Assembly (NCBI GenBank): GCA_047495785.1
Contig: JBLDXI010000015.1
Coordinates: 3,658,001 to 3,722,000, forward strand
Length of the DNA stretch: 64,000 nucleotides
Source of the DNA: Lepidodermella squamata
Lineage: Eukaryota; Animalia; Gastrotricha
Direction: 5' to 3'
The notes below the pieces were generated by a model. That model saw only the letters and a list, made by a program, of their open reading frames with translations. It was not told where the DNA came from and searched no databases. The translations under genes were made by a program, and so were the position numbers. This document shows, piece by piece, positions 32,206 through 64,000 of the stretch (position 1 is the stretch's first letter; every line of letters begins with the position of its first letter).

Positions 32206-32254
32206 AATTATTCATTTCTGAATTTTTAGATTTTTGTTATACAAAAATTTGCAT

Positions 32255-33877
32255 ATGGCAGTGAGAAGGGAGCTCAAATTCAAGGTTATAATATGTGCTG
32301 TAATGTTGGCTTTGGCGTGGGTAACCTTGTTCCAGCCAGGCGTAACCAAATCTAGCAGCGATTTCCAAATTTTCAAAATCTCAAAACTTCAAGACGATGT
32401 AATCTCGGTTGGGCATCTTCGAGGGAATAACCTGTTCAGCTACACAATGCGAGGAGTTATGCTTCGAGATTCGCTCTGCAATAGCAATTCAACTTTAGAA
32501 GAGTTCCAATCCGAAGTTGAGACATCGGTCCTACTAGATTTTTCAGCGCTTGTAGTCCCTCATTTCAAACAAATGTTCCCTGAACATGTTTGGAAAGAAC
32601 CGACTCTCTCAGGTCCAGGACCTTTCGCCCTTCACCCCGCTTGCCTGCCGAAAGATGGTCGATTACTATGCTTCTGCCGCGTTTGGCTTCGATTGACCCC
32701 AGCTGTCCGCGAGGGATCGAAAAATCGCTACCAAGAGAGCCAAATGTACATGTTGGAGTTGGACGACCAGCTTAACGTAGTTCGCGGGTCGAAAAAGCTC
32801 TTAGGTATTCCTAGTGCTATTCAAGACGAGCGAAATACAGGGCCGGAAGATCCGAGGTTGATCTCTCTTCACGACAACGTTTACATCAGCTTCATCAATG
32901 GCCATTTATATCCGAATGCAAATAGGACATTCAGGTAAAATTAATTTGTTTAGATTTTTTATAGTTTACATTTTTATTTAAATTTGAAAATTTGAGAATT
33001 AAATTTTAATTTTAATTTTTTAATAAATTTTTCAATTTTTAGACGGCAATTTCTTTGGTCGCTTGATGACAGTGAACTGTATACCGTGAAGGCGGACATA
33101 CCCGGCTATCACAAGTCAGATAAAAACTGGGTGCCTTGGGTTGTTGGCGAGAAATTCTACTACATGTTTCAATACCTTCCGGAGATGAGGGTTCTCGAGT
33201 GCAAATTCAGGGACAGAAATGTTGAAAAGCCTCAAATTTTGCATTGTGATTTCATTCTTGGCGATGGCCATCGTCCAACTAAGAGCTTGGAACTTCGAGG
33301 AGGATCGCCATTGGTTTACTATTCTGACAATGACTACTACCTTGCTTCAACTCATGTCGTGCTGAAGTTGAATAAAATAACTAGAAGTAAGTCGATTTCC
33401 TAACTGGAATTTTCCATCACTTTTTTAATTTTTTCAGAATATTCTTCCCAACTTATACTGGTCAACGCTCGAGAATTTCGAGTGGTCTTTGTGTCATCGC
33501 CGATTTTCATCGACCCAGACATGATGACTAGCATTCCACTAACCGTGAATCACAGTTTCCGTGCATTCCTTTACTCAACGGGCCTAATTGTGGAGAACCC
33601 GGACAGCCTGATACTGACCGTTGGGTTAAACGACAATCGCGGATACATGATTCGACTGCGCGGAGTGGCAACTATGCTAAGTAAATCTCGCTAATTTACC
33701 GTCGAAATAATCTTTATTTGCTATTTAGGGAAAGCTATCTCGAATGATCTGAGTTCGGACCTTCGGCAATGCGCTGAAAAATCGAAAGAAGCTGCTTCTG
33801 CAATGAATTCTTGGCTTATCAAAGTGAGTAATCACGAAGTCGACAAAATGCTCAAATCGAACGTGTCCCATATATGA
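32255..33877 (+). CDS. BMT/GT91-like copy 6, 4 exons, ~471 aa
   Basis: Exons 32255-32934, 33043-33386, 33438-33680, 33729-33877 in frame; NTGPEDPRL, DKNWVPW, LRGGSP. Confidence 0.8.
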
Positions 33878-41313: not shown

Positions 41314-43017
41314 ATGGAACCGCAATTCAAGCTAATACCTCGAAAGTTCATTTTCTACGGATTTTTTACATTGGTAGCCCTCGGTTTTATAACCGTGCTA
41401 TTTTACGAGCAATTACTGCTATTGAGGGTTCTACCGCGTAGAGGTCGACATTTTTGGAGGAAGGCCATCAATTGTTTCCAACGAGTTCGATATTTGGAAA
41501 ATGATTTGCATAATCTTGATTTCGACACTGGGGAATACGAGATCAGCGATTTCAATTCAACAATCAGCCCGCCGCCGCCGATTACTGACTTCAAATTATC
41601 GACTAAATTGAAGGAAAGCTCGCCGTATAGTTACCACCTACACGGAATTTTTCATTCAACCACCTGCGACATGAAACAAAACGACCCGGCTAAGGGTGTT
41701 CAAACCCTGTTTCGAGAGGTTCGGTCGTCTATTTTGTTCTCATTCACGCCCCATGTGAAATCTCATGTGGCTAAAATGTTTTCGAAGCAAGTTCGCGAGG
41801 AGGAATGGTTCAGGTTGTACGCGTTTCATTCAAGCTGTTTGCCTTACAAAGGCGCAATGACATGCGCTGTTCGGGTTTGGCTGCGGCTCAGCCGATTTCA
41901 GGCGTCTTCAGCCGATATTCGAAACCGATTTCAAGACAGTCAGATTTACATGTTTCAATTAGACAACAAGCTGTCGTATATCGAAAACTCGGGGCGGGTT
42001 GTAGCAATACCATCGCCTGTCAATGACATTTTCTACACTGGCCCGGAAGATCCGAGGCTGATAATAGTGAATGGCCAGCTATTTATCAGCTTTATTAACA
42101 CTCATTTCAGTGATAAAAAACGAAAAAGGCGGCAATATCTGTGGTCGGTCGATAGAAACGAGCTCTTCGATGTCGATGTCAATAATTACGAATTAAAATG
42201 GGCCGAAAAGAACTGGACACCCATGACTAATAGCAATAACAACGCCCTGAGCTACATCTATCAATTCATCCCTGAAATGCGGATATTGAACTGCAATTTC
42301 CCAACGAAAAAGGACGACAACTCGGTTCGATGTGCGTTTTTGATTCGAGACAAAACGGCAAAGACAATTTTGGAGAAATTTGAAGAGCCGGATTTCGAGT
42401 CGATTCTACGAGGCGGTTCTCAAGCGGCTCAATATTCAGGAGATTTTTACATCGCGATGACTCACACGCTTCAAACTTCGTACCCAGATTCAGGGCAAAG
42501 TAATTGACCTTTTTTTTTAATTCGACAGATTTTTTTTTGACAGTTGTCCCATAGTTTATGCTGCTCAGTTGGTGATGATTCATGTTGCCGATCGGCGGCT
42601 AATTTTCGTCTCATCCCCTATCCTGATCGATCCTAATTTAATGAGTTCGGTGAAAACGACTGTTGGATCGGTGAATAAGCCGTTTCTCTACCCGGAAAGT
42701 ATCTACGTCGAAAATCCGAATAGCATCATTTTCGCAACTGGCCTGAACGATAATGAATCATACCTGGTCAGACTTCAAGGGATCGGCTCAATGCTGAGTA
42801 TTTTTATTAATTAAATAAAAAATAAAAAATTTAAAAATTAATTTTTTTAGGGGCTGCGATTGAAAATTATGAGCAGCTAAAAAAGAAGTGTTCCGCAGGC
42901 CAACTCAGTGATAAGCGATTTAAATCAATCTACTCGGAGATGGAAGACTGGGTGAAGTCGAAAAATATCGCTGTCCTAGACAACCTTTTCACGAAAAGGC
43001 CTGATATAGACCCGTGA
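41314..43017 (+). CDS. BMT/GT91-like copy 7, 3 exons, ~531 aa
   Basis: Exons 41314-42499, 42555-42797, 42851-43017 in frame; YTGPEDPRL, EKNWTPM, LRGGSQ. Confidence 0.8.
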
Positions 43018-43296: not shown

Positions 43297-45464
43297 ATGG
43301 CTAAACATATGAAATATTTGATCCTAATACCGCTTGTTATAGCGGTTTGTTTCTCGTTCGGTATCTTATTTATGGCCGAGCAGACGACCATGTGGATGGC
43401 GGCTGAAATCAGCGAGCAAAAGTTTGCTATCAAACGATTTATATTGCCGCAAAGCTACGTCGTAGGCGATGGGAAGCAGTCATTTCGGATTCATAATAAT
43501 GGCGAGGAGTCGACAAGATTTTGGTTCCCATTGTCCGGGGTAATACCTAACGTCTACTGCTCAGACCGCGGCGAGACAAGGTGGTCGCAATCTGATAATA
43601 GCCCAATCAATGAACTTAACGGGCAAGCTGAAACTACTGTTCTACATCGATTCTCACCGTTCATAAATGACCACGTGCGAGGCATGTTTGCCCACCAGAT
43701 CACGCAGGAGCAGTGGTTTGTGATTTATCCTTTTCAAATATCATGCATTCCTAAAAGCGAAGACCGACTGGTTTGCGTCGTTCGAATTTGGTTTCGCCTC
43801 GACCGATTTGAGGAGGCTAGCGATTTTGTCAATCGTTTCCAGGATAGCTATTTCTATCAAATCGAGCTGGACAGTCAGCTGAATTACATTAAAAACTCGG
43901 GGAAAATAATTGGCATTCCGGCTGCGATCCAAAATTTACATTACACAGGGCCTGAAGGTATGAATTAAATTTGACCGTTTGACAAGTGAAAAGTGGGGTT
44001 TGGCGTATGTTCTGTATTTTCCAGCAAATGGTAACAATTTTGTTGACTTAAGGAGGGACGATTCTTGGATTCCTAGATTACTCAGTTTATCTTGGCGATT
44101 TTTAAATGTTCAGACCTCTAGGGGGCTCCCATCCACCTCAAAGGACGAGAGAAACCCCAAAGTGTCGCCAAAGCTTATAGATATTGGTTGAAGTGGAAGC
44201 ACTGGCTTGATTGAACTCAGTGCTTCCACTTCAACCAATATTAGTTTCTTTTTATTGCACTCATTTTTGCACTCTCAACCTAGAATTTTAGAATGAGTGC
44301 AATAAAAAGAAACTAATTTTTTTAAGCGCGCATTTTTTTCGAAATCAGCAATTTTCACGTGTGAACTTAGACGCCCATTTTCTCAACAACCCTGATCGCT
44401 TATCAGCATAATTTTGATATCGTTCGACTCCTCGTTCATTGATCTTGAAAGCGGCATCAAAATCTCACGATGTCAAAAATATCGCCAAGCCCCACTTTTC
44501 ACTTGTTATTAACGGTCAATTTATTTATTTGTAAAGTTTCTGACTGTTGCCACAGATCCTAGACTGATTGCTATTAATGGATCGATTTTCGTCAACTTTA
44601 TAATGGGACATGACCAGCCCGGGATTTCAGGAACCTTTCGGCATCAATTTCTCTGGTCGCTAGAAACAAGCAGTTTATTCGATGTTGAAATAAATGGCTA
44701 CAAGCAGAACGCATTCGAGAAAAACTGGTCGCCTTGGGTCGTCAATGGAAGCCTGCTATTCGTCTATCAACTTCTACCCAAACCTAGAATTTTGCACTGC
44801 CCGATCGTTAAAACACGAGCTTTCAGGTATGCGAACTGCTCATTTGCCGCAGGAGCGCCGAAACAAGGTAAAAAAGTTGAAACCACCCTGCTAGTACTTC
44901 GAGGCGGCTCGCCTTTCGTTCACTACATCGGAGACTATTACATCGCTGTCACTCATTCAGTACAACCAGCGTATTCGGGAAAGGGTCTGTTATTCTAGAT
45001 TTTTCTAATAATTTTATCCTTTTTTATTTTATCAAGCATATGCCGCTCAACTGACGCTGATTAACGGACCAGCTGGCCGAGTGGTTTTCGTATCGTCACC
45101 TATTTTACTTCACCCGAGTGTGATGAAGTCGCTAAAAACAACAGACCGTAACATTCTTCGCCCCTTTTTGTATGCCCGCAGCATTTTTATCGAGGATGAA
45201 AACACGTTCGTCATCGCTGGCGGGGTGAATGATCACGACAGTTTTCTCATCCGCTTACGAGGAGTAGCAGCTATGCTTCTCGACGCCATTGAAAGCGATC
45301 GGCGTCGATCGAAGGAAGAACGCAAATCGCCAGATTCTTGTAGTAATCTCGAGGAAAAATTGCTAGGTGCTTACAAAGCCATGGAAACTTGGATTACTCA
45401 GAAAAATCTGAAGGAACTCGATAATTATTATTACAGAAATGATAAAATTCAGATTAAAAACTAA
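43297..45464 (+). CDS. BMT/GT91-like copy 8, 3 exons, ~505 aa
   Basis: Exons 43297-43957, 44556-44984, 45037-45464 in frame; an intron splits GPE|DPRL; EKNWSPW, LRGGSP. Confidence 0.8.
43971..44519. mobile_element. MITE inside intron 1 of copy 8 with two internal hairpins
   Basis: Imperfect ~35-bp TIRs TTGACCGTT..ACAAGTGAAAAGTGGGG.TTGGCG; internal inverted repeats at ~44181-44241 and ~44241-44316. Confidence 0.8.
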
Positions 45465-45515: not shown

Positions 45516-47039
45516 TTAAATAGCACCAGCAAGGCCGCCTAAATTTGAACCGGTGAGGAGCAGCAGTGTTCGACTGTTCGACGTGCCATTATTTGCCAGT
45601 AGGGAGCTATTCACCGAATAATTACTCGGCCCGTGTATCATTTCATTACTCAGCGCGGCTAGCCCTTCAGCTTGACCTCCCGAGTAATCAATTAGCAGTA
45701 GAAAGTAGGTCATAATGAGGCCGATAAACGAAATGACGTTGCTTTTACGAATGTGAATTAGCCCGAACATGGTAATGCCAATAGGTTCAGAATTAACTTG
45801 GCTGATGAATAAATTAATTTGAACAGCATCTGCAGCTTGACGGTCTGATTTAGCTTGAAGCGGGCAATGCGTGTCATCCCGCCGCAGATAATGCAAAGCT
45901 CCAACTACAGAATGAGCCGAGTGGTTGAGAAATGCGGCTGATCCCAAGTTTAAAACGGCGAAAAGAATTGAAATCATCAGCCAAATTACCCGGAACGTCA
46001 TCCCAACCGTGTTAACCTGTCGGTCGTATAGTAAAAAGTACATGTAGTTGATGCAGCAGAGGAAGGATGAAGCAAGATTAACGCCAACAATCGCTCGAAC
46101 GCAAGTGTCCCAACTTCTTACAATGCGGCCGAGACGTAAATGTTGTAGCCGGTACTGTTCAATATCGACCTCTTGATGCTCGTTATTGACAGGAGCCATT
46201 AGGCTGTTTTTCAGCAGGTGACTGTCCTGAAAACTTTCAGCGTCCGAATTCACGACGTGATTACTATCAGAGCTTCTTCGCTGCATCGAGTTTTGATGCC
46301 CTTCAATCTTTTTCCTCAGTTTACTCTTGAACATTTCGAACGAAAACCCGAAGAAGGTGTTGTAGCAGAAAACGAATGCATTAGCCATAGCAGTCGCTGA
46401 ATCGCTGCAGAAATGAGTCAAAATTTGCAGGAAAATCAGAATAATCCTTAGCCCTAAATTGTTTAGGGCCTGGGGTAGAAGATGAAACGGGGAGAACATG
46501 AAGATGTAGTTCTCCATCGAGATGATGTACAATGTCAAAAGAGCGATTGAATTCAGGATGGTAAACAGCCATGCCACGATTAGAACTGTTTTAACGGTTG
46601 TTGAGGTCCCGGCGCAAATCGGCCCGGATTGCAGGCTGTAGATCTCACGCCGGAAGTCGTTTAGAGCTCGTTCAATCCTGTCGGGGTTGTTGAAAAAGTT
46701 GTGGAATAGGCAAGTTCTGCCTATAACACAGCTCAATTGATACAGGACAACGTTGAAGAAGTAAACAAGTTGGGAGACATTCATTTTAGTCGTGTGATTT
46801 GCCCCTAGGGACATTGTCACCGTGAACAGGAGTAGCCTTGCCGGGAAAATCCAGCTGTAGATGACGGCAAACAGGGCGGCATAATAATTTACCCGTCTTA
46901 GCCATATCGAAGATTTCGGGATTGGAAATGGTCGAAGTAGAACGATGGCTAGTGACCAGTCTAAAGGTCTCATAACTTTGTAGAGACTGTGATTTGGGTG
47001 CTGCGGGTTGCGGATACTTGATCCGATTGATCGACTCAT
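45516..47039 (-). CDS. Gustatory receptor-like (Grl, 7TM ion channel superfamily), intronless, 507 aa
   Basis: About 7 hydrophobic segments; C-terminal LFISQV...GITMFGLIHI...FIGLIMTYFLLLIDY fits the Gr/Grl TM7 TYhhhhhQF-type motif. Confidence 0.85.
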   Translation of the reverse strand: MSRSIGSSIRNPQHPNHSLYKVMRPLDWSLAIVLLRPFPIPKSSIWLRRVNYYAALFAVIYSWIFPARLLLFTVTMSLGANHTTKMNVSQLVYFFNVVLYQLSCVIGRTCLFHNFFNNPDRIERALNDFRREIYSLQSGPICAGTSTTVKTVLIVAWLFTILNSIALLTLYIISMENYIFMFSPFHLLPQALNNLGLRIILIFLQILTHFCSDSATAMANAFVFCYNTFFGFSFEMFKSKLRKKIEGHQNSMQRRSSDSNHVVNSDAESFQDSHLLKNSLMAPVNNEHQEVDIEQYRLQHLRLGRIVRSWDTCVRAIVGVNLASSFLCCINYMYFLLYDRQVNTVGMTFRVIWLMISILFAVLNLGSAAFLNHSAHSVVGALHYLRRDDTHCPLQAKSDRQAADAVQINLFISQVNSEPIGITMFGLIHIRKSNVISFIGLIMTYFLLLIDYSGGQAEGLAALSNEMIHGPSNYSVNSSLLANNGTSNSRTLLLLTGSNLGGLAGAI

Positions 47040-47681: not shown

Positions 47682-48105
47682 CTAATCCAAGCTCGAGATG
47701 TATCCATCGTAATCGTCATAGTCCTCAGCGTCATCTTCAAATGCACAATTTTTGGCAAATTCAGCTGTCAACTTAAGGTAGCCAGGTAGACCAATATCTG
47801 TGATCAAGAAAAACAGAAAACAATGATGACTTTCAATCGTAATCGAGTTGCTTACGCTGAGAAAGTAGTTGAATAGAGTTCCTGAACCCTTTTGCTCGGT
47901 TTCTAGCCCAATCCATGCATGAAGGAAACAGAGTAGCCTCCTCTACAGCGTTTTCGAACTGCTCGTCGGTGACTTCAGGGAAGATGTTGCTCCAAGGCCC
48001 ACCTGGCAAGTCTATGTAAGCAGCCTCTTGCTCGGGGATCACTGCACCTTGGCATGATAGGGCCACAGCCAGAATGGCGAAGACACAAGCGAGGAATGCC
48101 TTCAT
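47682..48105 (-). CDS. Small secreted protein, family member C (2 exons)
   Basis: Signal MKAFLACVFAILAVALSCQG; FENAVEEA..FPSCMDW and AEFAKNCA; same intron position; acidic tail. Confidence 0.72.
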
Positions 48106-48645
48106 GTTAAAATTCGAGAAAATATTTGATAGTGTTTGAAAATCACAATACATTTCGTGCTTCAAATAAGCGTTATGAAATTAGATGAACTCGATTGAAC
48201 TCGCAGATGGCGAGCGGTGATCGGCGTTGACAGCGGCCCAAGCAGACCTATTATGCGCCAATCTTTAACATCGGAAAAATCAGGGGAGATTAAATTGAAA
48301 CGAGACACTCTCCCATCCGACCCTCATGCCATGCAACTAGCCACTATAAAACGATTATCATCATTTGTAAGAGACCAATGAGCTGATAAAATCTCATCCA
48401 ATGGCGATTTTAGACGTGTAAAATTTTATTCATGTAAATCAATAAATTTTTATTCACCAGGTGAGCTCGCAAGAGAAGCCCATTATACTACCTTCAAAGA
48501 CAATATATGGAAAAGCACGCACAGCACAAATCATAACGGAAACAAAGTACAACAAACATTCAGTGTCAAGGTTAAGGTTCCGGTTGATCAAAAAATAGGC
48601 ATTATTACAGCGTCTAGGGATCGCAATATCCTGACTGGCGTTATT

Positions 48646-51537
48646 TCAAATCAAACTCGCCCATTTCGCCGTGGAGAATTGAATCGCGACGAACCCGATA
48701 ATTGCGACTGTTGCCGAAACAAGATCGATGACTCGACTGAGAGCTTTGTGCTTCAAGACAAGCTTAAGTTTCGGTGAAAAGAAGAAAAGAACCGCTACAA
48801 GATGATAAACTGTGCAGGCGAAGCAGAGCCATGTCGAATACTTGACGTACTCGTTCAGCAAGATTGTTGTCGAAGTTTTAGGAACTAGGCCCAGGACAGC
48901 CGACTGCGTGACTGTTAGCGTCAGCAGAATTGTCACGGTGAAAAATGCCCGATCGGTCATTTGAGGTGGCATGAAGAAGGCTGCAATGTTGAGCAGGCAC
49001 AGGACGAATGTTGGGACCATCAAGTTGTTGAAGTAATAGTCCGGAACGCGAGCTATTGTCAGCTGAAACTTGACAATGCTCACGTCAGCGCCCCGGAATC
49101 GAGTCTTGTCCAGCGTCTGATTCCTCGAGACAAATCGCCACTCTGTTGTCTCGTTAAGCTCAGACCAGAGGAATACCGGATCCGTGAACACTAGGAGATC
49201 AGTTGAACGCTGTAGAGTAAACGTGAACTCGCATGTCTGCGTGTCGAATGGGAACAATTCCAAATGAAGCAGACACTGTGATGAATAGAGGCCTTCAGAT
49301 GACCATAGGAATTCAAAAGTCCGATTTCCAACTGGGGCGTTGACGTTCTTGATCGAGAGCGTTAGGTCGTTGCCGAAGTTACCGCCGCTTCGGTAAATGT
49401 CCGAGGTTGCGCTAGTGATGAATCTCAGACCAGGTACCCATATTTCATCTGGCGATGACACATAGACTAAATCGTAAGGATTAGCCGAGATGAGGTCAGA
49501 GCTATTTTGAGGGCATGTTGATACTTGCCATTTCAACAACACGATTCCAAGGGTGTTCACTGCTTCGTTCACAGTGTCTACTTCAGATAGACGGCTGATT
49601 TGAAACGCAATCAAGATCGGGATAGGTTTGTCGAAGACAGGCGGGGCGATTTTCAGAGCGCTGAAATCGCTGCATTTCGTCATGACGCGCTCGCTCGTCT
49701 CTGCAGGGGGTGATGTCTGCTTTGGGTAGCAAGTGGGTACTAAATCTTCAATAACCTTCGGATTCTGGTTCAAGCAATCCTCTAAAGCTGGTTGTTGGCT
49801 CCTTGTTGAAGCCGTAATCATGGATATACCTATACTCGTGGTCGATGAAGTCGGCGTGCTTATCTTTTGATTTGATTGAAGTTGTCTCGCTGATGCTGGG
49901 CTGATTTCCAACGTACTACCAATCACTCCAGCGGCTGCCATGGTAGTACTGTCGGATGGAGGATTCGGGGTCCCCATGCTCGCATCAAATGCCGACGGAC
50001 TTTTCAAGTCTGCTGCACTTGTCAACACAGCTGGGGATACCGAGCTTGTGGTTTCTTGTTGGATGGAAGGAGAAGTGCGTGAAGGACTCGAAGTGCTTAA
50101 ATCCCTTTCGTCAGGAATAGTTTCAAAATATAGAGCTTCAGTCACTTCAGTGGCGGAAGTCTTGGCTGAAGTGGGCGTGACCCATATTGGCATTTGAGTT
50201 GTGTGGCTATTGGCAGAACTCGATTCAAAACTGGAAGTTAATTTCACATTTTGAGTCGTTGTCTGTCTGCTTGTTGCTTCAGTTGTAGTAATCGGATTTA
50301 CCGTGCTAGAAGGATTTTGAATGAAAGCCGTGGAAACTCTGGTTTTAGTACTCGCGACAGTAGTTGTAGTCCTGTATGCACTTGTCGATGTTGAAGTTGT
50401 GGTAGTAGAGGTTGAGGTGGTAGGAGTAGTGGTTGATGTTATTCTGGTCGTAGTAGTAGTCTTTGTTGAAGTTGTCCTAGGAGTCGTAGTCGTAGTCGTA
50501 GTCACTGGAATAACAACGGAACAACGTCACTTCACTAATGAAAATTTCAAACACAAACCCATTTCACAACTAACGGCTGCGGCAAGGTCTACTCGATTTG
50601 GTTTACAGATTGGATGATCGGGCCATTTTGTACCGCAATCGGCTATATCCACTTTCTTACCAGATGGGCATACGACATCGTCATAAGTGAACAAGCCTGT
50701 TGACATGCGTTTGACAGCTAGTTTGTTATCGAGGCTTTTGCCGGCCCTGTCGAATCAAGTAAGATTAAAAATAGACGAAATGAGATGAAAACTCACGTAA
50801 AGCCCATATATTTACAAGCGGCGTTCGCTACATCAGCGTTGAAGTTGGAGCTATCATCACATATTAAACCCCACACATCGCCGTTGAAATACTCGAGAAT
50901 CCCAGCCGATCCGCCTCCGTAAATGCGATACTTTGGTGTTGTGCTGCCTAGGATAAAAATTGGTATTCAGCTCTCATTCAGATCATAAAAAATTCTAACT
51001 ACCTTGCTGGCACGGGTGATCATCGCCGCAGCAGATCGCAGCAACTTGAGAAAGCTCTTTGCAATAAATTGCTCCTTTACGACTATTTGAACACGTCGCT
51101 ATATCAGGCTCTTTTCCAGTTGCGCAAACTACGTTGTCTAGCCATACAGGTAAATCCAGTGAAGATGGGCGGTCTACGACTGCGTATTCATTGCCCATGG
51201 ATTGTCCTGACCTGTGAAGTGAAGCATTTTTATAAATGGTGAAAAAAATACTCCGGGAAAAATTAACGTGTGACCAAGCGCGCGACATACGGCCTCAGCA
51301 GTCTTGTGGTTGAAGTTGCCATTATCGTTACACACGTACGTCCATGACTTTTTATCGGCGGAATAATATTCGAGTAGTCCGAACTGCTTGCCACCGGTGA
51401 TGCGATACAAGCTTGAGGCATTGCTCATCTCTAAACTTGTAATTAAACGTAACAATTGCGAAGGAATTAGCGAGCTTACCTTGAAAGACGAACAATGCCA
51501 TAAGCAATACATGTAGTAACCTTGAAAATAACTGCAT
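48646..51537 (-). CDS. SRCR-SRCR-mucin-pLGIC fusion, gene 1, 6 exons, ~875 aa
   Basis: Exons 51537-51480, 51430-51268, 51211-51003, 50947-50797, 50746-50559, 50504-48646 splice in frame (2628 nt); SRCR motifs GILEY..WGLICDD..A..AC..MG and VWLDNVVC.G.E.DI..C; Cys-loop CLLHLELFPFDTQTC; 4 TM. Confidence 0.88.
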
Positions 51538-52613
51538 TATATTCGTTTTTTTCGACTGATAATTTTCTGACTATCGCGAGGTTCTTTCAAACGGAAACAT
51601 GTTCAAATCGATCTTACCCGTATCAATATTGTTTAGTTCAGGATATTGATGGCGAGACGAAGTTGGCTTTCAATCCGCAAATATTTATTTTTGACCTTTT
51701 GAAGAAAAATCGAAAGTCTCCCAGGGATTCGTCCCTGGCGAAAAGGAATTACTAATAGCAATCTAATAAGAACTCGCCCTCGAACGATAATGGTGTTCTC
51801 GAGGAAAATCAGTCTTATGTTGTTGCAATCGCTATCGAGCATTTTCAATTTCGATGAATAATTGTAGTATTATGTGACAAAATTTGCCATTCATTCTTCT
51901 TTTACTTGATTTTCTTTTACTTAATTATTTTCAATAGTATCTTCAGACGACACATTGGACTCTTTGAACTATGTTGCGGGAATCGAGAGCTCAGGTCACC
52001 CAAGGTATACGTCACGTATCATGATTTTCACGTTCAAAATGCGCACTAAAACTTGACAAATTTGATTGAAGAACTCAGGTTCAGTAACATTGAGTGCGCT
52101 GATGTGGTATTTGTGGTATTTGATTTAGCATGAACGTTGCATACGGGTAGTATTTGAAACGGCCCGAGCGCGAGTATACAAAACACTGCTTCCCTGTCGG
52201 GCTTGGGTCCGCCAGAGCACGAACGATACGAAGTTCATTGCTCCAACCTACGATACTGACCGATGAATATTCGCCAGACGTGCATACTCGCGTCCCGATT
52301 ACTTTTACATTGATAGATCGGCTTGCAACCTGAGTTTGACCAATCGATTGAGAATGAAACGGGGGATTTTGGTATACATTTTAAGGTATAATGTAATCCA
52401 TTTATTCGCGCGAGTTACCCAACATCACGGTATTATAAAAATGTATCAGACTGGCAAAGATATGAAACCGATTGCGTTATATGCAGAAAACATGATTTCT
52501 AGGCATGCAATTTTTAGTCCATCCAAGTTCACCAATCAAATTTTCATTGCGCTGAATAAAAATCACCAGGTTCCAGGTTAATCCGGCAAAAAAGGAAGAA
52601 CCGCCTATTTCTA
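51506..52613 (+). repeat. 1108-bp direct repeat, left copy (native upstream region and first 32 nt of gene 1)
   Basis: Appears identical to 54909-56016 (constant offset 3403; identical ORF translations). Confidence 0.95.
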
Positions 52614-54908
52614 CGTTCACGTCGCGGAAGAACTCGCACTTCTGAAAAAGTCCGACAGTACGTCTAGTACGGTAGGCTCATGCTGTATCGAGTTGTACTG
52701 TAATTTCTACCGTATAAAAAGTACGGTTTTGTCGACCGTACTCCTAATACGGCGGGCCAGCCGTATGATCTGGTACAGCGGAATATAACTGTAGTCGAAG
52801 TACTGTCGATAGCAACTGTATATGATTGTACGGTATCCAGCCGTAGTTGATAGTACAGCTTGCAGTATTTGAAAGTACAGCATAGTACTGTAGAAAAAAG
52901 TACTGTCGGACTTATCAAAATGCTGCAACGCGTGACCTTACAAATTAAACTTTCGGATAAAAAGAAGTATCCACACAGGGTTTCCAATTTATTCAGGCTC
53001 GCATTTTATATCTTGGTGAAATCTCGTCAATGTAAATCCAAATTACGGTGTTGACCACATCCGCGTTCTTTTGAACGCATTTGTGGGAATTTGTGGTTAT
53101 TTCTGAGCTAATTATATGTAATAAGCATGTTACAATGTAACAGTTACGACCGAAGTCCGAAAGCGACCACATCGTGGTCTGGTCGATCAGACCCCGACGT
53201 GGCCACAGTCGATTTCCACGTCGCGCTCTGGTCGACTGGGATGCGACGGGCCTGCAATCTCTCTTATCAAACACCTTTGTCGGGCTTCGGCTCGTAGGTG
53301 TCAACCCAGGTACGGTGGGCTCCAAATCGAGAACAATGGACGTGCGCGCGCATTGTCCCGCCGTGCTCCGGCTCACACTTATTGCGCGCGAGCCAGAGCC
53401 CGACCGCACTCATCGACCAAGTCGAGTGGCCGAACATTTTTTTAATGTTTTTTACCGGACTTCGGTCGTAACATAACAACCAACATCGAAGTAACGACTT
53501 GGAAAGACTGCTGTAACCTCATTTTTAGGACCTCAGTTTAGCTGATGACCAGTGCCGGATTTTGCCTTTTCCCTGTTGGAAATTTCTCGGGGCCGTCAAA
53601 ATACTAATTTCCCTGGTCTTTTACCTTGTCGGCTCAAAATTGCGGTCTAAAACCTCTCTCTTGGGCGGAAAAATCGATCATTAAGGCCGATTTCACAAAG
53701 CAAAATTGTCCCTCCCACTGTGAAATGAAGACAGTTAGAAATTATTGCCATTCCGACGCAACTATGCCCTAAGTTTTGATATTCAACAACTAATTGGGCT
53801 TTTTTAATAACTGCCCGCCCATAGCTTAATTGAAAGGCCACGCCACAGCCGGAGAAACCGAAGGGTCCCCCGTTGGCCAATGAATTCTTTATTCGGGCGT
53901 CAAGACATTTCTGGTTACAACATCCATGCGACCTTCACCTCTACAACAGGGGAGTTGACAGCGGGCCGAATAGTGTTTACGAAACGAACAGTTACGACGA
54001 GTTGGATAGTTATGGACAGAGCTTCGCACTCAATTGGCCAATAAGTTATTGGGAGTAATTAGGGCTGAATTGTCGCTGACTAAAATGTCGAATGAGGGAA
54101 TGCCGTCTTATAAATACAAATCTACGGCTGAAACGTCTCTCGCTAAATCGTCGCGGCTAAAATGTTGCTACTAATTTTTATTTAAATATGGGCTCTTATG
54201 TCGCGGGCTGAATTCTCTTCCGGCTCAATTGACGGGACTGAAATGTCGGGGCTGAAAAGTCGTGGCTAAAACGCCGTGGGCCGAAATGTCATACGACCGT
54301 AATTTGTCAAATTCCGAGAATTCAGTGTGATCCTCAATTCAGTGTGATTTTCAAACGTTCAAGGGCATGAAATTTCTTTACGCTATAATAATGATATGCG
54401 TCTTTTTTGTCGCTAGCTCATTTGTCGCCGCCGTAAAGTAGGTCGGCTTCCAGGTAACAAATACCAGCCTCTGAAATGAGTCAAAACGAGTATAAAGGCT
54501 TTATAAAACGCGTTCATCAGACATGAGACATGACCCATCGATTATAGCCATTCATACTTTGATACATATTCCACGAGTTTCACTGTACCGCCGCTACTGC
54601 TATTAGCCGTAGATTGAGGTACAGCAACCCCAGCTGTACATGATAAATACAGTTATTCGCCGTACATCTATGTACAGTGCATTCGACAGTACTAATAACT
54701 ACGGCGTTTGGCAGTACTTATCAGTACAGTGTGATTACTGTATGCTAATGTACGGCCGGTATCTACTGTACAAATTCTACAGCTGTAATACCGTAGAAAA
54801 CAATACTGTCGAGATGAGCTGTACAAAAAATACAGTCAACTAAACTGTATACGAAAGTACTGTAATCAGAAAAAAAACCGAAGTGCGAGTTCTTCCGCGA
54901 CGTGAACG
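52614..54908. mobile_element. Non-autonomous TIR element, 2295 bp
   Basis: 29-bp perfect TIRs CGTTCACGTCGCGGAAGAACTCGCACTTC; subterminal regions rich in TACAG/AGTACT; no transposase ORF. Confidence 0.85.
53143..53472. mobile_element. Nested MITE, 330 bp
   Basis: 17-bp perfect TIRs GTTACGACCGAAGTCCG; TAACA on both flanks (offset by one base on the right). Confidence 0.7.
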
Positions 54909-56016
54909 AATACATGTAGTAACCTTGAAAATAACTGCATTATATTCGTTTTTTTCGACTGATAATTTTCTGACTATCGCGAGGTTCTTTCAAACGGAAA
55001 CATGTTCAAATCGATCTTACCCGTATCAATATTGTTTAGTTCAGGATATTGATGGCGAGACGAAGTTGGCTTTCAATCCGCAAATATTTATTTTTGACCT
55101 TTTGAAGAAAAATCGAAAGTCTCCCAGGGATTCGTCCCTGGCGAAAAGGAATTACTAATAGCAATCTAATAAGAACTCGCCCTCGAACGATAATGGTGTT
55201 CTCGAGGAAAATCAGTCTTATGTTGTTGCAATCGCTATCGAGCATTTTCAATTTCGATGAATAATTGTAGTATTATGTGACAAAATTTGCCATTCATTCT
55301 TCTTTTACTTGATTTTCTTTTACTTAATTATTTTCAATAGTATCTTCAGACGACACATTGGACTCTTTGAACTATGTTGCGGGAATCGAGAGCTCAGGTC
55401 ACCCAAGGTATACGTCACGTATCATGATTTTCACGTTCAAAATGCGCACTAAAACTTGACAAATTTGATTGAAGAACTCAGGTTCAGTAACATTGAGTGC
55501 GCTGATGTGGTATTTGTGGTATTTGATTTAGCATGAACGTTGCATACGGGTAGTATTTGAAACGGCCCGAGCGCGAGTATACAAAACACTGCTTCCCTGT
55601 CGGGCTTGGGTCCGCCAGAGCACGAACGATACGAAGTTCATTGCTCCAACCTACGATACTGACCGATGAATATTCGCCAGACGTGCATACTCGCGTCCCG
55701 ATTACTTTTACATTGATAGATCGGCTTGCAACCTGAGTTTGACCAATCGATTGAGAATGAAACGGGGGATTTTGGTATACATTTTAAGGTATAATGTAAT
55801 CCATTTATTCGCGCGAGTTACCCAACATCACGGTATTATAAAAATGTATCAGACTGGCAAAGATATGAAACCGATTGCGTTATATGCAGAAAACATGATT
55901 TCTAGGCATGCAATTTTTAGTCCATCCAAGTTCACCAATCAAATTTTCATTGCGCTGAATAAAAATCACCAGGTTCCAGGTTAATCCGGCAAAAAAGGAA
56001 GAACCGCCTATTTCTA
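54909..56016 (+). repeat. 1108-bp direct repeat, right copy
   Basis: Copy of 51506-52613, starting immediately after the right TIR. Confidence 0.95.
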
Positions 56017-56181
56017 CAGTACAAAATGCTCAACACACACACACACAGACACAACATAAATGATTAAATCATAACGGAAACAAAGTACAACAAACATTCA
56101 GTGTCAAGGTTAAGGTTCCGGTTGATCAAAAATAGGCATTATTACAGCGTCTAGGGTTCGCAATATCCTGGCTGCGTTATT

Positions 56182-58993
56182 TCAAATCAAACTCGCCCAT
56201 TTCGCCGTGGAGAATTGAATCGCGACGAACCCAATAATTGCGACTGTTGCCGAAGCAAGATCGATGACTCTACTAAGAGCTTTGTGCTTCAAGACAAGCT
56301 TAAGTTTCGGTGAAAAGAAGAAAAGAACCGCTACGAGATGATAAACTGTGCAGGCGAAGCAGAGCCAAGTCGAATACTTGACGTACTCGTTCAGCAAGAT
56401 TGTTGTCGAAGTTTTCGGAACTAGGCCCAGGACAGCCGACTGCGTGACAGTAAGCGTCAGCAGAATTGTCACGGTGAAAAATGCCCGATCGGTCATTTGA
56501 GGTGGCATGAAGAAGGCTGCAATGTTGAGTAGGCACAGGACGAATGTTGGGACCATCAGATTGTTGAAATAATAGTCCGGAATGCGAGCTATTGTCAGCT
56601 GAAACTTGACCACGCTCACGTCAGCGCCCCGGAATCGAGTCTTGTCCAGCGTCTGATTCCTCGAGACAAATCGCCACTCAGTTGTCTCGTTAAGCTCAGA
56701 CCACAGGAACACAGGGTCCGTAAACACCAGGAGATCTGTTGACCGTTGCAGCGTGAACGTAAACTCGCATGTCTGCGTGTCGAATGGGAACAATTCCAAA
56801 TGAAGCAGACACTGCGAAGAATACAGGCCTTCAGATGACCATAGAAATTCAAAAGTTCGATTGCCAGCTGGGGCGCCGACATTCTTGATCGAGAGCGTAA
56901 GGTCGTTGCCGAAGTTACCGCCGCTTCGGTAAATGTCGGAGGTTGCGCTCGTAATGAATCTGAGACCAGGTACCCATATTTCATCTGGCGATGACACATA
57001 GACTAAATCGTAAGGATTGACCGGAACGAGGTCAGAGCTATTCATAGGGCACGTTGATACCTGCCATTTTAACAGGACTATTCCGAGTGCGTTCACAGCT
57101 TCATTAACAGTGTCTACTTCAGATAGACGGCTGATTTGAAACGCAATCAAGATCGGGATAGGTTTGTCGAAGACAGGCGGGGCGATTTTCAGAGCGCTGA
57201 AATCGCTGCATCTCGTCATAACGCGCTCGCTCGTCTCTGCAGGGGGTGATGTCTGCTTTGGGTAGCAAGTGGGTACCAGATCTTCAATAACCTTCGGATT
57301 CTGGTTCAAGCAATCCTCTAAAACTGGTTGCTTGTCCGTCGAAGAAGCAACCACAGATGTCATTGTAGGTGAGGAATCTGATGGGCTTGTTCCCATGTCG
57401 GCGCGGATCTCTGCTGTTTCGGATGGGGAAGCTGAGCTTGTACCTTCTTTCTGGACGAGAGGAGTTAGAAGTCGCGTGAAGGCTACCGAGCTTACAGTTT
57501 CTTGCTGGATGAAAGCAGGAGTGCGTGAAGAACTCGTATAGCTGAAATCATTTTCCTCAGGAAAGGTTTCGAGGTATAAAGCAGGTGTTGCTTCAGTTGC
57601 TTCAGTTGTAGAAGTGACCATTAACGGTATGAGATTTGTAGACCTCGCAGTACTCGATTCAAAACCATATGTCGGTTTGAGATTTTGAGTCCTACTCTGG
57701 CTGCTTGTTGCTTCAGTTGAAGTAATCGGATTTACCGTGCTCGAAGGATTTGGAATTAAAGTTGTGGATATTCTGGTTTTAGTACTCGCGACAGTAGTTG
57801 TAGTCCTGTATGCTCTTGTCGATGTTGAAGTTGTGGTAGTAGAGGTTGAGGTAGTAGGAGTAGTGGATGATGATGTTCTGGTAGTAGAACTACTAGTCGT
57901 TGAAGTCGGCTTAGTTGAGGTTGTCCTAGAAGTTGTGGACGTGGTCACTAAATGACGCAAAAATATTCAGATCAATGATCAAGACTAGGAGTTGACTAGG
58001 AGACAGTAACGTACCGATTTCACAGCTAACGGCAGCAGCAAGATCTATTCGATTTGGCAAGCATACGGGATGGTTTAGAGAAACTTGACCGCAAGATGTT
58101 ATGTCAGCCTCAACACCAGTCTTGCAAACTACGTTGTCATAGACGAACAAGCCCGTCGACATGCGATCGACAGCAAGATTGTTTTCAAGTTTCTTGCCGG
58201 CCCTGAGCAATCATACGCTCGATCAGCGCCATTGTAACTTGCTAGAGGAAAAGTAGCTTACGTGAAACCCAAGGATCTACAAGCGGCATTCGCTGCTTCG
58301 TCGTTAAAATTTTTAGAATCATCGCATATCAGACCCCAGACGTCTTTGTTGTAGTACTCGAGAATTCCGGATGTCCCTCCGCCATTTATCCGATACTTCT
58401 TGGTCGTGGTTCCTTGTTAACAGGTAATAATACACCTTTCAAACCCAGATGATAGATCAGAGTTATACCTTGTTGACAAGGGTGTTCATCGCCACAACAA
58501 ACCGCGGCAGCTTGAGAAATATCTTTACACCACCTTGCACCGCTTTGACTGCTTATGCACGTTGCTATGTCCGACTCTTTTCCCGTAGAACATCTGACGT
58601 CGTCTAGCAGAAAGGCTAATGCAAGCGAAGAAGGACGGTCTACGACTGCGTATTTATTATTCATCGACCTCCCTGACCTTAAAATCCAAACTGTTTATCA
58701 ATCTATGCAGGCGTTATATATAACTCACGAGTAGTCAAGGGCGCGACATGCGGCCTCTGCAGCTTTGTCATTGAAGTTGTTATTATCGTTGCATATGTAG
58801 GTCCAGGCTGTTTTAGCGGCGGAATAATACTCGAGTATTCCGAAATGTTTGCCACCGTTGATGCGATACAAGTCCGAGGCAGCGGTAGTCTCTGAAATTA
58901 TTTCTATTAACCAAACGTTAGAGTAAAATAAAATTGTATACCTTCGTAAAGATACGAAAGAATAAGAAACAAGCTTAGAACTGATAGTGGCAT
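56182..58993 (-). CDS. SRCR-SRCR-mucin-pLGIC fusion, gene 2, 6 exons, ~842 aa
   Basis: Exons 58993-58942, 58891-58729, 58677-58469, 58412-58262, 58202-58015, 57947-56182 in frame (2529 nt); internal exon sizes 163/209/151/188 identical to gene 1. Confidence 0.88.
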
Positions 58994-59673
58994 TTCAAAC
59001 TCAATTTTCGACCGAATAGCAGAAAATATATTTTCAACCGCCGAAATAAACAATTTCAGCTTGAACAGTGCGAACTTCAGGATATTGCAGCAACAACCAG
59101 AAGTATGCATAGAAGCATACAGAATCTGGCTGTGTTGGTATAATTATTGCGATTTGTTTGTCGAGCAGCTTTTCTGGAATTTACCCCCGTCATTGAGGAC
59201 AACTATAGAGGAACAGTCATTTTCCAAGGTTGTTTGACTCGGCGTTTGGCTCTACAATTTACATGCGTATAGCTATATACCAAATGCTGTTATCAAAATG
59301 ATGATTCGCTGAGACTTCTCGAGCTGCCTTTCTGCGCTGAGAGATCGTTTTAAAATGATGAAAACGCAAAAAAAGCCATTGGGTGTATATTGGTAGTATT
59401 GGGCCTGTCAACACGCTGTGTACCTAATAAGTTTCGAAGTTGAATATTTGGGCTACAATTCGTCCAAAAAATGTATTTCTGTAGATGGATTCGATTCTGC
59501 TGATCACCTTTTTCTTCGAGGGAGGTTTCCTAGAGCTCATTCCCTTTCCACGGCTCTCGGGATAGAAAAGAGCAACTAGGCTCTCCTAACAAAGAACAAA
59601 GGATTCGAGCCGGCTAAAGCGCTTCCCATCGGCTTGCTTGAAACTGACTAAATGAGTTACTTGGTCTTCATGA

Positions 59674-59973
59674 CATTGTGTTTGAGGTTGTAAGTTGAAA
59701 AAAATCCGCACGCTGATTGGTCAGTTGGCTCGTATCCATGACTCCGCCTTGCTACTTGATCGTGCGATCTATAAAATTTGTGGCTTTTATTATTTTTATG
59801 AAGGCCGTATCGTAGCACGCGTTTCCAACAAATGCGTAAAACCATTCATAAAACGATATTTTTTGCAAACATTTTATGGATCGCACGATCAAGTAGCAAG
59901 GCGGAGTCATGGATACGAGCCAACTGACCAATCAGCGTGCAGATTTTTTTCAACTTACAACCTCAAACACAAT
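59674..59973. mobile_element. ~300-bp MITE with ~105-bp inverted arms; terminal base displaced by a nested insertion
   Basis: CATTGTGTTTGAGGTTG... / ...CAACCTCAAACACAAT; final G at 61275 followed by GA, matching GA at 59672-59673 (candidate 2-bp TSD). Confidence 0.85.
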
Positions 59974-61271
59974 GGGTGTTTTTTTTTATTCGACCCGACT
60001 TGCCCGCGCCCGCACTGCCCGCACACGTTCATTTATTCCGCCCAGACCGCCCGTACATCCACGGGCGCCCGAACACATTTTTTTATTAGCCCGGCTTGCC
60101 CGCACTCTACACATCGCCCATAACGCCCGGCCTCTCAAGACCGGGCAGCTGCGGGAAAAATGATCACGCACGCGATTCGAAGCAGCAAAAAATTGCAAAA
60201 AACATTTAATATGAGTGATAAAGTAGTGCAAGTGATTTTATTTCTGCTGCTGAATAATAATTCAGGAAACCATAAAATAAATGCAAATAATTTAAAAATA
60301 ATTATGGTCAATAAGAAGTACGGCAAAATCGCAGCGATTGGCAAGCGATCCCGGGTGGGTATTTCACCTCAATTTATCTCAAATGGCCCCGCATTAGAAT
60401 TGCTTTAAATTATTTTTCCTTTCCGGTATCGAACCGAGAGATGTGAAATTTAGATCGATTTTCATCGTAGATTCGGGTATCGAATCACAATAGCAGTGGT
60501 TGAAGAATACCAAAAGTCTAAACCCGTATTAATTATCAAATTTTAATAATGCTGCATTTAAAAGCCTTTAATTAATGTTAATTAATGTAATTTTGAATTC
60601 AAAATTCCAGCCTCCGTTCAAAATTTTACAAAATTTCATGACAAATTTAGAACATTGTTGAATGATTGAGAATCATATGAGATCGAATTTATCCAGATCC
60701 GAAGCGAGTTGGACACCGGAATTAAACTATGCGTGGCGAATGACCTTGACCAGGTTGACCAGGCCTGTTTCAGAATATTTTAAATGCTGAAGAATGGGAA
60801 TTTGCGATCAGAAATATCATATGAAATCAACTGTACTCGGTCACATTTCACATTTCATTAAATAATGCTGTAGATTTTATCCTTCCTAATTAAGCAAGCA
60901 TCAAGTTAGACTGGAATGGTGCGAATAATTTTCTCCCTTGGTTTGTGAACATAAGCATGAATCAGCAATCGCAGTAAGAAATCGCGAAAATAAGTGTTAT
61001 TAGCACTCGAGCCCGATGACGTTTTTTTACTCGCCCGTGTTTCCCAGCTCGCCCGCGTAGAAGTTGTATTGATAAAAAAATGTTTTCGGGCCGCCCGCAC
61101 AGCCCGGATTTTTTTATTCACGTCGCCCGTGATGCCCGACTCGCGGCCCGGGAGAAAAAGCCGGGGAATAAAAAAATGTACACGCGCCCGCGAAGCCCGG
61201 ATTTTTTTATTGCTCGCCCGTACAATCCGCCGGATCTCCCCGGGCGCAGTGGGGAATAAAAAAAAACGCCC
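59974..61271. mobile_element. Non-autonomous TIR element (Harbinger-like), ~1.3 kb
   Basis: TIRs GGGTGTTTTTTTTTATTC / GAATAAAAAAAAACGCCC; 3-bp TSD AAT; subterminal GCCCG clusters at both ends. Confidence 0.8.
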
Positions 61272-61288
61272 AATGGATCTGATATCCA

Positions 61289-61512
61289 CACCAGAAAAAA
61301 ATCACCCTAATTTGGGTGATAAAAAAAATCGAACTTTTAGCTCGTGAATTCTCCTAATTCATGGATTTTCAACATTTATCTGAATTCATGCCCAAAATCA
61401 CCCTACTTCATCTACAAAAACGCAGTTATTTATCTACTGACAGCATGAATTCAGATACCGAAACTAAATTCATGCTTTCGGTAGATAAATTATCGTGATA
61501 TTTTTTCTGGTG
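61289..61512. mobile_element. 224-bp MITE, CACTA/EnSpm-like ends
   Basis: TIRs CACCAGAAAAAAATCAC / GTGATATTTTTTCTGGTG; 2-bp TSD CA. Confidence 0.7.
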
Positions 61513-61916
61513 CACTTCCCAAGGCCTGCGATCGTTACGCCTGATAGGGCAGGGGCCCTTCTGATCTTCTCCGTCGCTCATTGAGTGTAGCAGTTGTTAA
61601 GATCAACAAATAATGTATTTTTTACGAGGCACAAGTTTATTCGAGAAAAAAGGCACGTTACTTTCAGAACGAAAAACTGAAAAATTCAAATGATAAATTA
61701 TTCAAATACAATTTTGGTTATAACACAGCCGTAGGACGTGGCACTTTTATAACATTAAACATAAGGAGAGAAATTGAGACAATCAGGTTTTAAAACTAAA
61801 AAAAAAACACAAATATATGAACTTTTTAAAACGAGAAACAGTAGGTGCATTCCATAGGATCGATATTCACATTGCCACCTGTCAAGAATTTTACATCTGA
61901 AAGAATGGGCGATCTT

Positions 61917-64000
61917 TCAAATCAGCTTTGCCATTGACGCGATGTAAACATGAATTGCAATAAAACCCGCAATACCAAGAGCGAGTAGTGCCAAATCGAG
62001 CACACGGCTGAGAGACATGTACTTCAAAACCTGCTTTTTCTTTTGGAAAGAAAACAGGAGAACCGCAACCAAATGGTAGACGGTGCAGCCGAAGCACAGC
62101 CACGTCAGGTATTTAACGTATTCGCTTAGTAAAATCCTTGTTTTAGTTTTCGGAACCAAATCTAACACGGCGGACTGGGTAACTGTCAGGGTTAGCAGAA
62201 TAGTCACAGAGAAGCAAGACCTATCAGCGAGCTGAGGTGGCATCAAGAATGCGGTCAGGTCCAATATCCCCAAGACAAAAGTCGGCACCATCAAGTTGTT
62301 GAAATAATAGTCGGGAATACGAGAAAGGGTTACAGTGAATCTAGCGACGGAAACATCCGCTCCTCGGAAACGAGTCTGGTCCAAGGTCTGGTTTTTGAAT
62401 ACGAACCGCCACTCCGTTGTCTCATCCGCCTCTGACCAAAGGAATTGAGGATTAGTGAAAAGAAGCAAGTCAGTCGACCGTTGTAGGGTGAACGTCAACT
62501 CGCAATTTTGCGTGTCGAATGGAAAGTTACTTAGCTCAAGTTGACATGTCGATGAGTAGAGGCCCTCTGATGTCCAAATGAACTCAAACGTACGATTGCC
62601 TTTTGGATTGCCGACATTTTTCATTGAGACTGTCAGATCATCGCTGAAGTACCCGCCACCTCTGTATATGTCTGACGAAGCACTGCTGACATATCGAAGC
62701 CCAGGTACCCAAATGTCTTGACGGGAGGAGACATAGACCAAGTCGTAGGCGGTTGTCGGAATCACGTCCGAACTACTCTCTGGGCACGTTGAAACCTGCC
62801 ACTTGAGAAGAATAATCCCAAGAACGTTCATCGCTTCATTCACAGTATCGATTTCAGCTAGTCGATGTATCTGGAATGCGATCAAGATCGGGATTGGTTT
62901 ATCGTAGACAGGAGGGGCGATTCTCAGGGCTTGGAAATCGCTGCATCTCGTCATGACATTTTCGGTCGTTTCTTTAGCGGGCGAAGTTTGCTTCGGGTAG
63001 CATTTTGGAATCAAGTCTTCTATGACTTTTGGCGGTTTGGTGTTCTCACATCCTTCCAGAGTAAGAACGGGCCGGGTAGTAGTTGGTGTCGACGCGGTTG
63101 TAGTTGTTGTCGTTGTTGTTGTCGTAGTTGTCGATGTTGTCGTAGCTTTCATAAAAAGAAGTATCTCATATTTATTAGTAATTTCTCCGCTGTTGTTTAG
63201 CTTACGAGAGATGCATGTAATAGCTACCGCCATTTCGACATGAAGCTTGCAGGTGTCATGATTGGGGGAGTAATTTCCGCATGTTGCGATATCCGGTTCG
63301 TTCCCAGTAGAACACACGACGTCATCGAGCAAGACAACAGGCTTATCCATGCGGCTTGGAGCAAGACTGTTATCAATAGGTACACCATCACTGCGAATAA
63401 AATCAAATTATTAGAAAATTTCTTGAACACAAATTGAGAATATACGGATATCCGAGCGCTTTGCATACTGCTTTAGCTGCCTTGTCATTGAAGTTCGGAT
63501 TATCGTTGCAAATTACACCCCAAATCCTGTCACTAGCAAGATAGTATTCGAGAATTCCTGAAGACCCATTGCCGTATATACGGTACTTTGAGCTTGGATT
63601 TCCTGTGAAGAATACTTGATATCTTACACCTCTAACTTCTTTTCGCAATACCTTGTTCGCAGGGAGGAGCATCCCCGCAGCAAACGGCAGCCACTTGATT
63701 GACTGTGCTGCAGTATAGGTAGCCGGTAATTTTATCCCCTGCGCAGGTAGCAATGTCCGCTTCGCTTCCAGTTTGACAAATCACGTCATTCAGCATAAAT
63801 GGCAGAGGTGATGTCGGTCTATCAACCCAAGCGTACTTGTTCAGCAAACTTCTTCCAGTGCTGTAAAACGGAAGTTCTTTTAATTCTACCATGATGAATT
63901 AATGGCAACTATAATCTCACGAGTGCCCAAGAGCTCGACAGGCTGCCTTGGCAGCTAAATCGTTGAAGTTCGGATTATCGTCACAAATGTATGTCCATCT
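61917..64000 (-). CDS. SRCR-SRCR-short mucin-pLGIC fusion, gene 3 (5' end outside window)
   Basis: Same exon series (WTYICDDN..ACRALG; FMLNDVICQTGSEADIATC; GILEYY..WGVICND; VLLDDVVCSTGNEPDIATC); last exon from ~63150; Cys-loop CQLELSNFPFDTQNC; 4 TM. Confidence 0.85.

Follow-up and report, generated by a model that had tools for sequence, protein, structure and literature searches.

The DNA analysed here (the window) is a stretch of 64,000 nt from the gastrotrich Lepidodermella squamata, positions 3,658,001-3,722,000 of the forward strand of contig JBLDXI010000015.1 (GCA_047495785.1). It contains three tandem genes, g1, g2 and g3, predicted to encode Cys-loop ion channels of the pentameric ligand-gated class (pLGICs) that carry two scavenger-receptor (SRCR) domains on a mucin-like stalk. 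The genes are marked by three large minus-strand open reading frames (ORFs; 48646-50505, 56182-57960 and 61917-63350), each with a Thr/Ser-rich run at its start and a Neur_chan_LBD module at its end. Short ORF pieces upstream of each match SRCR in Pfam over half the domain length. Gene models were built by hand from the window DNA using GT-AG introns only, which measure 49-67 nt across the models, and the exons were joined by script.

Gene g1 (51537-48646, minus strand) is complete and has six exons, which splice in frame to encode a protein of 875 aa. Exon 1 (51537-51480, 58 nt) codes for the signal peptide. Two exons make up the first SRCR domain (51430-51268 and 51211-51003; 163 and 209 nt) and two more the second (50947-50797 and 50746-50559; 151 and 188 nt), and the last exon (50504-48646, 1859 nt including the stop codon) holds a 241-aa stalk and a 378-aa channel module. 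Gene g2 (58993-56182, minus strand) is also complete and has the same architecture, with 842 aa and a 210-aa stalk; its six exons (58993-58942, 58891-58729, 58677-58469, 58412-58262, 58202-58015 and 57947-56182) measure 52, 163, 209, 151, 188 and 1766 nt. The 5' end of g3 (64000-61917, minus strand) lies beyond the window, which cuts inside the second exon. The g3 exons present are 64000-63921 (80 nt, partial), 63860-63652 (209 nt), 63602-63446 (157 nt), 63390-63206 (185 nt) and 63145-61917 (1229 nt), and the encoded stalk is 30 aa long. All introns of g1 (n = 5, 49-56 nt) and g2 (n = 5, 50-67 nt) are GT-AG.

Exons 2-5 have the same lengths in g1 and g2 (163/209/151/188 nt), and the exon sizes of g3 differ from these by multiples of 3 only. 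Every SRCR domain is a two-exon unit of symmetric phase 1-1, and the stalk/channel exon begins in phase 1 as well. Phase 1-1 symmetry is classic for shuffled extracellular modules. In both g1 and g2 a hydrophobic signal peptide is encoded by exon 1 and by no other exon. An earlier reading of this DNA, made from the sequence only, had proposed tandem genes spliced in frame as signal peptide, SRCR, SRCR, stalk and pLGIC, with conserved exon sizes and phases; both proposals were borne out, for g1 and g2 over the whole gene and for g3 as far as the window reaches.

The head is joined to the stalk at intron 5 (g1, 50505-50558, 54 nt, GT..AG, phase 1; g2, 57948-58014, 67 nt; g3, 63146-63205, 60 nt; all on the minus strand). 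At 54-67 nt these introns are in the size class of the other introns, and a terminator, a promoter and a leader would not fit into them. The reading frame of the channel exon closes upstream of the acceptor, without an ATG, after 23 nt in g1 and 20 nt in g2; in g3 the 60-nt intron is open in frame. The first Met of the channel exon is codon 104, 109 and 64 in g1, g2 and g3, respectively, and no hydrophobic segment or signal peptide follows it, in agreement with the earlier statement that the large exon lacks a start of its own. The phase of the joint is kept in the three paralogs, with synonymous sites saturated between g3 and g1/g2.

Between g1 and g2 the exons are 70-79% identical and the introns 48-57%. 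The ratio of non-synonymous to synonymous substitution rates (dN/dS) was 0.12-0.19 for the SRCR exons, indicating purifying selection, and 0.07 for the channel. Because the exons are more conserved than the introns and dN/dS of the SRCR exons is this low, the heads are read as constrained coding sequence. Positive selection on the heads was considered and rejected, as dN/dS is far below 1.

The identity of the heads was tested by half-domains, exon by exon. The N-half and C-half exons of all copies were aligned, and the resulting profiles were compared with PDB sequences. The N-half profile matched PIT54 (2.5e-13), CD163 (8e-12), MARCO, CD5L, TMPRSS2, CD6, SCARA5 and DMBT1, and the C-half profile matched CD163 (1.3e-9), PIT54, neurotrypsin, SR-A, SCARA5, Mac-2BP and MARCO. 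All PDB matches better than E 0.09 were SRCR proteins, and each half was aligned to the corresponding half of the SRCR fold. The exon-wise Pfam matches span positions 7-46 and 57-99 of the 100 positions of the SRCR profile, with a best half-domain score of 28.9 bits (SRCR_2, cut-off 27). In alignments of the six half-domain sets, six Cys are invariant and in canonical order; domain 1 has two additional Cys near its C-terminal end.

Six Cys in a domain encoded by two exons is the group-A pattern according to the exon rule for SRCR domains. On these features we assign to each gene two SRCR domains of group-A type. They share the order of the six Cys and the two-exon split with the group-A proteins MARCO, SR-AI, SCARA5 and Mac-2BP, which, in contrast to the proteins described here, are collagenous or soluble scavenger receptors and none of which is a channel. 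The heads also differ from the usual SRCR domain in the EDAGV motif, in that the acidic E-D before the last Cys is not conserved in g1-g3.

The stalk of g1 (49780-50504, minus strand) shares its exon with the channel and consists of 241 residues, 47% of which are Ser or Thr. Over the three genes the stalks measure 241, 210 and 30 residues (g1, g2 and g3), contain 47-73% Ser+Thr and are free of Cys. O-glycosylation of the stalk is predicted from this composition.

The channel module of g1 (48646-49779, minus strand) comprises a Cys-containing segment preceding the ligand-binding domain (LBD), the LBD itself and the membrane segments M1-M4. The Neur_chan_LBD profile (PF02931) scored 36-38 bits in g1, g2 and g3, against a gathering cut-off of 26. 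Using phmmer, the 370-residue module of g1 matched the nicotinic acetylcholine receptor (nAChR) beta subunit in the PDB with an E-value of 1.3e-13, and ACR-23, alpha6 and alpha3 also at about 1e-13. All three genes contain the Cys-loop (C-x13-C with FPFD); across 37 relatives there is no variation at either Cys or at the Pro, and next to none at the Phe and the Asp. An AlphaFold2 model of the channel, made with the alignment of 37 relatives, had a pLDDT of 89 and a pTM of 0.82, and showed a beta-sandwich followed by four transmembrane helices (M1-M4 at 240-262, 268-291, 300-327 and 338-366). M1-M3 align to nAChR alpha3 and beta, and a Foldseek search with the model gave TM-scores of 0.7-0.84 to GlyR, GluCl, nAChR, GLIC and ELIC. 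By sequence match and model, the module is a predicted complete Cys-loop pLGIC subunit.

When M2 is aligned to nAChR alpha3 and alpha6, it has Asp at -1', Arg at 0' and Leu at 9', and no Pro-Ala at -2'/-1'. Because of this Asp and the lack of Pro-Ala, the pore is predicted to be cation-selective. In the same alignment to alpha3/alpha6 a gap takes the place of the loop-B Trp; in loop C, which is shortened, Gly-Ala stands for Cys-Cys and the Tyr is missing. Identity as an acetylcholine receptor was rejected, since these aromatic-box residues are absent. The nicotinic acetylcholine and 5-HT3 cationic receptors are alike in being the best PDB sequence matches, and in the Cys-loop, Leu 9' and the acidic -1' residue. 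They differ in having an M3-M4 loop of at least 100 residues, whereas the SRCR-headed channels have a link of about 10 residues and almost no intracellular loop, and in lacking the head and stalk that the SRCR-headed channels add N-terminally.

The window also contains a head-less pLGIC (25063-26196, minus strand), which offers a contrast case of a stand-alone channel gene. It is a single ORF of 377 aa with its own ATG, an N-terminal hydrophobic leader and a short M3-M4 loop; it matches Neur_chan_LBD at 2e-22 and is 19% identical to the SRCR-headed channels.

An exhaustive HMMER search over 1.84 billion representatives returned 3378 relatives. The best relatives show 35-42% identity and all derive from metagenome assemblies in ENA, and many relatives have a long N-terminal extension inside one ORF. 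In P0002, P0006, P0010, P0011 and P0017 the signal peptide, one or more LamG-like heads, a Thr-rich linker and the channel form one ORF each. In P0010 a LamG-like domain is followed by a long stalk rich in Thr, Ser and Pro, whose first 40 or so residues are mostly Thr; P0017 carries three LamG_3 domains in an ORF of 1099 aa; ahead of the channel in P0002, P0006 and P0011 there are one or two LamG-like domains. At the P0001 locus (L001, 9270-11386) the head is located in an adjoining ORF for a secreted LamG-like protein of 243 aa with its own signal peptide, which abuts the stalk-channel ORF. These two ORFs are probably joined by a short intron or a frame change.

The metagenomic relatives resemble g1-g3 in the channel (31-42% identical), the Cys motif before the LBD, the Thr-rich linker and the short M3-M4 loop, and belong to the same clade. 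They differ in their heads, which are LamG_3/ConA-like (one to three copies) or include EGF and are not SRCR, and several are single ORFs without introns. A profile of the SRCR domains of the window found no SRCR domain in 160 related proteins, nor in the contigs of P0001 and P0002. None was detected either in six-frame translations of 84 related loci, which had been collected by a search seeded with a 5-row alignment, and searches of the ESM Atlas gave no cluster combining SRCR and Neur_chan. In a word-indexed protein search the g1 channel gave no match, P0002 returned only itself and P0001, and the family alignment returned two proteins; these few matches are probably due to the small number of shared 5-mers and to Thr-run words in the alignment query.

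In a maximum-likelihood tree of the channel modules, g1, g2 and g3 form one clade (SH-aLRT 100). This clade lies inside a group of nine (SH-aLRT 95), which in turn lies inside a clade of sixteen (SH-aLRT 99). All other members of the group of nine have heads or N-terminal extensions, except one truncated fragment. Because the SRCR genes nest among LamG/ConA-headed relatives, the simplest history suggested by the tree is that the head was replaced within an existing clade of head-stalk-channel proteins. In this history, pairs of phase 1-1 SRCR exons would have replaced a LamG/ConA-like head, and tandem duplication and gene conversion of the channel part would have followed.

No paper on SRCR domains joined to Cys-loop channels was found in the literature searched, so the earlier statement that no SRCR-pLGIC fusion has been characterised holds there. 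The SRCR-on-mucin-stalk channel was found nowhere else among the 160 proteins, the 84 loci and the Atlas searches. The accompanying claim that animal pLGICs normally begin directly at the LBD was too strong if taken as a rule without exception, given the LamG/ConA-headed relatives and a set of arthropod proteins in ESM Atlas clusters. The latter combine LDLa and a pentraxin or C-type lectin domain with Neur_chan_LBD, with a TM-score of 0.80 to the SRCR-headed channel. They too are animal pLGIC modules with extra N-terminal extracellular domains, differing in that the heads are others, with no SRCR and no mucin stalk recorded (judged by cluster record). In the literature searched, no paper on these arthropod proteins was found. 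Many long proteins that end in a pLGIC module are also found in AlphaFold DB, and some of these are certainly the result of merging gene models.

In published work, N-terminal domains (NTDs) of pLGICs are described as prokaryotic only (PMC9897478; bioRxiv 10.1101/2025.02.24.640012, 2025 preprint), and the Pro-loop inventory paper does not mention any. Animal pLGICs with an N-terminal accessory domain are thus present in databases and absent from the literature searched. In DeCLIC the NTD is made of two jelly-roll lobes that lie packed on the extracellular domain without a long linker in between (Lycksell et al., PMC9897478). Prokaryotic pLGICs of the DeCLIC type resemble g1-g3 in having extra extracellular (periplasmic) domains before the channel and a short or absent intracellular domain. 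The SRCR-headed channels are, by contrast, animal and true Cys-loop channels, with SRCR heads on a mucin-like stalk of 30-241 residues. They were not assigned to the DeCLIC type of NTD-bearing pLGIC, since 30-241 low-complexity residues part the head from the channel.

We conclude that each gene is very probably one transcription unit for an SRCR-SRCR-stalk-channel fusion. The case is built on gene structure, on selection, on the relatives that hold head, stalk and channel in a single ORF, and on topology: a pLGIC has its N-terminus outside the cell, on the side required for mucin stalks and for SRCR domains with their many disulfides, which fits the predicted order of the parts. Several observations weigh on the other side. 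The one sequencing run found to cover the locus is genomic DNA, with even intergenic depth, 50:50 variants and no joints, and the signal-peptide exon of g3 falls outside the window. Most of the Pfam matches to SRCR half-domains (18-22 bits) are below the gathering score. With no SRCR domain in the 160 proteins or at the 84 loci, the SRCR form lacks an independent replicate outside this genome. The acetylcholine-type aromatic box is not conserved in the SRCR-headed channels, and both the ion selectivity and the capture or anchoring function proposed below are read from sequence.

The product would enter the secretory pathway as a membrane protein, with signal peptide, two SRCR domains, Ser/Thr stalk and channel subunit in that order, and the subunits would assemble into pentamers showing up to ten SRCR heads above the membrane. 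Given the fusion, we lean slightly towards a division of labour in which binding of a small ligand or ion to the channel's own extracellular domain causes it to open, and the tethered heads capture, concentrate or anchor, binding surfaces, matrix or polyanionic particles. The heads would then set where, and on what, the channel senses.

Alternatively, the channel could be an ionotropic receptor for pattern recognition or contact, opened through stalk tension or clustering when a multivalent or particulate ligand (microbe, alga, polyanion or matrix) binds the heads. The earlier reading had put forward a candidate pattern-recognition, contact-chemosensory or tether-gated channel. Ten heads per pentamer on extended stalks would suit binding by avidity, and the heads are kept under purifying selection; the canonical site for a neurotransmitter is degenerate and lacks the Trp of loop B as well as the Cys-Cys and Tyr of loop C, and a 7tm_7 chemoreceptor gene adjoins the array. 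We nevertheless regard direct gating by the heads as unlikely, the linker being long and flexible and differing greatly in length. Stalks of 30 to 241 residues are found on channels that are 71-97% identical, which speaks against a rigid allosteric coupling, and conformational change would be poorly transmitted by a mucin linker that is disordered. DeCLIC, the only NTD-bearing pLGIC studied, packs its lobes directly on the extracellular domain (PMC9897478).

A reading in which each unit is a pair of genes, the first coding for a small SRCR-SRCR protein that is secreted and the second, 54-67 nt downstream, for the channel, finds some support in what happens if intron 5 is retained: read-through adds 13 codons in g1 and 30 in g2 before a stop is met, so an SRCR-only product is possible. 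The channel gene of such a pair would have no ATG before codon 104 (g1) or 109 (g2), no signal peptide in its exon and no space for a promoter and leader. A phase-compatible joint, moreover, has been conserved in three paralogs across saturated synonymous divergence, and relatives hold head and channel in a single ORF. Two separate genes are for these reasons highly improbable.

The amino-acid identity of g1 and g2 is 69% in the heads and 97% in the channels. In a sliding-window comparison (48500-50432 vs 56040-57870) nucleotide identity was 89-97% over the channel to about 140 nt beyond the stop codon and 61-79% over the SRCR exons; the stalk begins with a patch of 93%, and the flanks could not be aligned. 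The synonymous divergence (dS) was 1.0-1.9 in the SRCR exons, 0.59 in the stalk and 0.24 in the channel. Because dS is 0.24 in the channel and 1-1.9 in the heads, gene conversion is favoured over fast evolution of the heads, and the pattern of a variable head on a constant channel looks like mainly a conversion of the 3' part of the gene. Mosaic identity with such a contrast in dS looks like the trace of conversion tracts and not of accelerated head evolution.

An exact direct repeat of 1109 bp (51506-52614 and 54909-56017) flanks a 2294-bp element (52615-54908) whose terminal inverted repeats are about 28 bp long. The direct repeat takes in the upstream region of g1, its ATG and 32 nt at the start of exon 1, and a second, orphan g1 start is therefore present at about 54940. 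It could stem from a recent insertion accompanied by duplication, or be an artefact of the assembly or of haplotypes. That the array consists of recent duplicates which look intact and are decaying or unexpressed, as the transposon-rich and recently rearranged cluster with its exact repeat around the element might suggest, is very hard to reconcile with three frames intact over 619-875 codons, dN/dS of 0.07-0.19 across heads and channel, and conservation of all Cys, the Cys-loop and the pore residues. Just downstream of g1 (48289-48524) the DNA run gives two contigs of about equal depth with 13 differing sites, which are heterozygosity of the sequenced individual and not editing.

About 1.6 kb downstream of g1 lies a single-ORF gene for a protein of 507 aa (45516-47039, minus strand) that matches Pfam 7tm_7, a gustatory-receptor-like chemoreceptor family (E 7.7e-9). 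Between this gene and g1 there is an ORF of 110 aa (47833-48165, minus strand) with an internal Met followed by a segment resembling a signal peptide, and no Pfam match. An array of paralogous proteins resembling type-II membrane proteins is located at 4161-4967, 11408-12040, 19104-19808, 22740-23579, 29745-30979, 32234-32938, 41314-42507 and 43297-44998. Its member at 41314-42507 has a weak Pfam match to BMT (beta-mannosyltransferase; 2.4e-6, just below the cut-off), which is unusual for an animal. The ORF at 7178-8581 (plus strand) encodes a P-element/THAP9-type transposase with TNP-like RNase H and GTP-binding insertion domains (1.4e-26).

By their sequence relationships, g1-g3 are placed in a wider, undescribed animal family of head-bearing channels. 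The boldest version, which we consider improbable and put forward as speculation, is that SRCR heads above the glycocalyx would bind microbial, algal or matrix surfaces and turn this into a cation current within milliseconds, as one arm of an animal family with interchangeable heads (SRCR, LamG/ConA-like or EGF) on one channel chassis. An animal clade in which a mucin stalk links interchangeable recognition heads to a Cys-loop channel would, if true, overturn the view that extra N-terminal domains are confined to prokaryotes, and would mean that surfaces or patterns can also be recognised by a fast ionotropic route. Such a clade would in addition be a natural system for studying how remote domains influence Cys-loop gating, one that is directly testable as the paralogs differ in stalk length (30 vs 241 residues) and head type.

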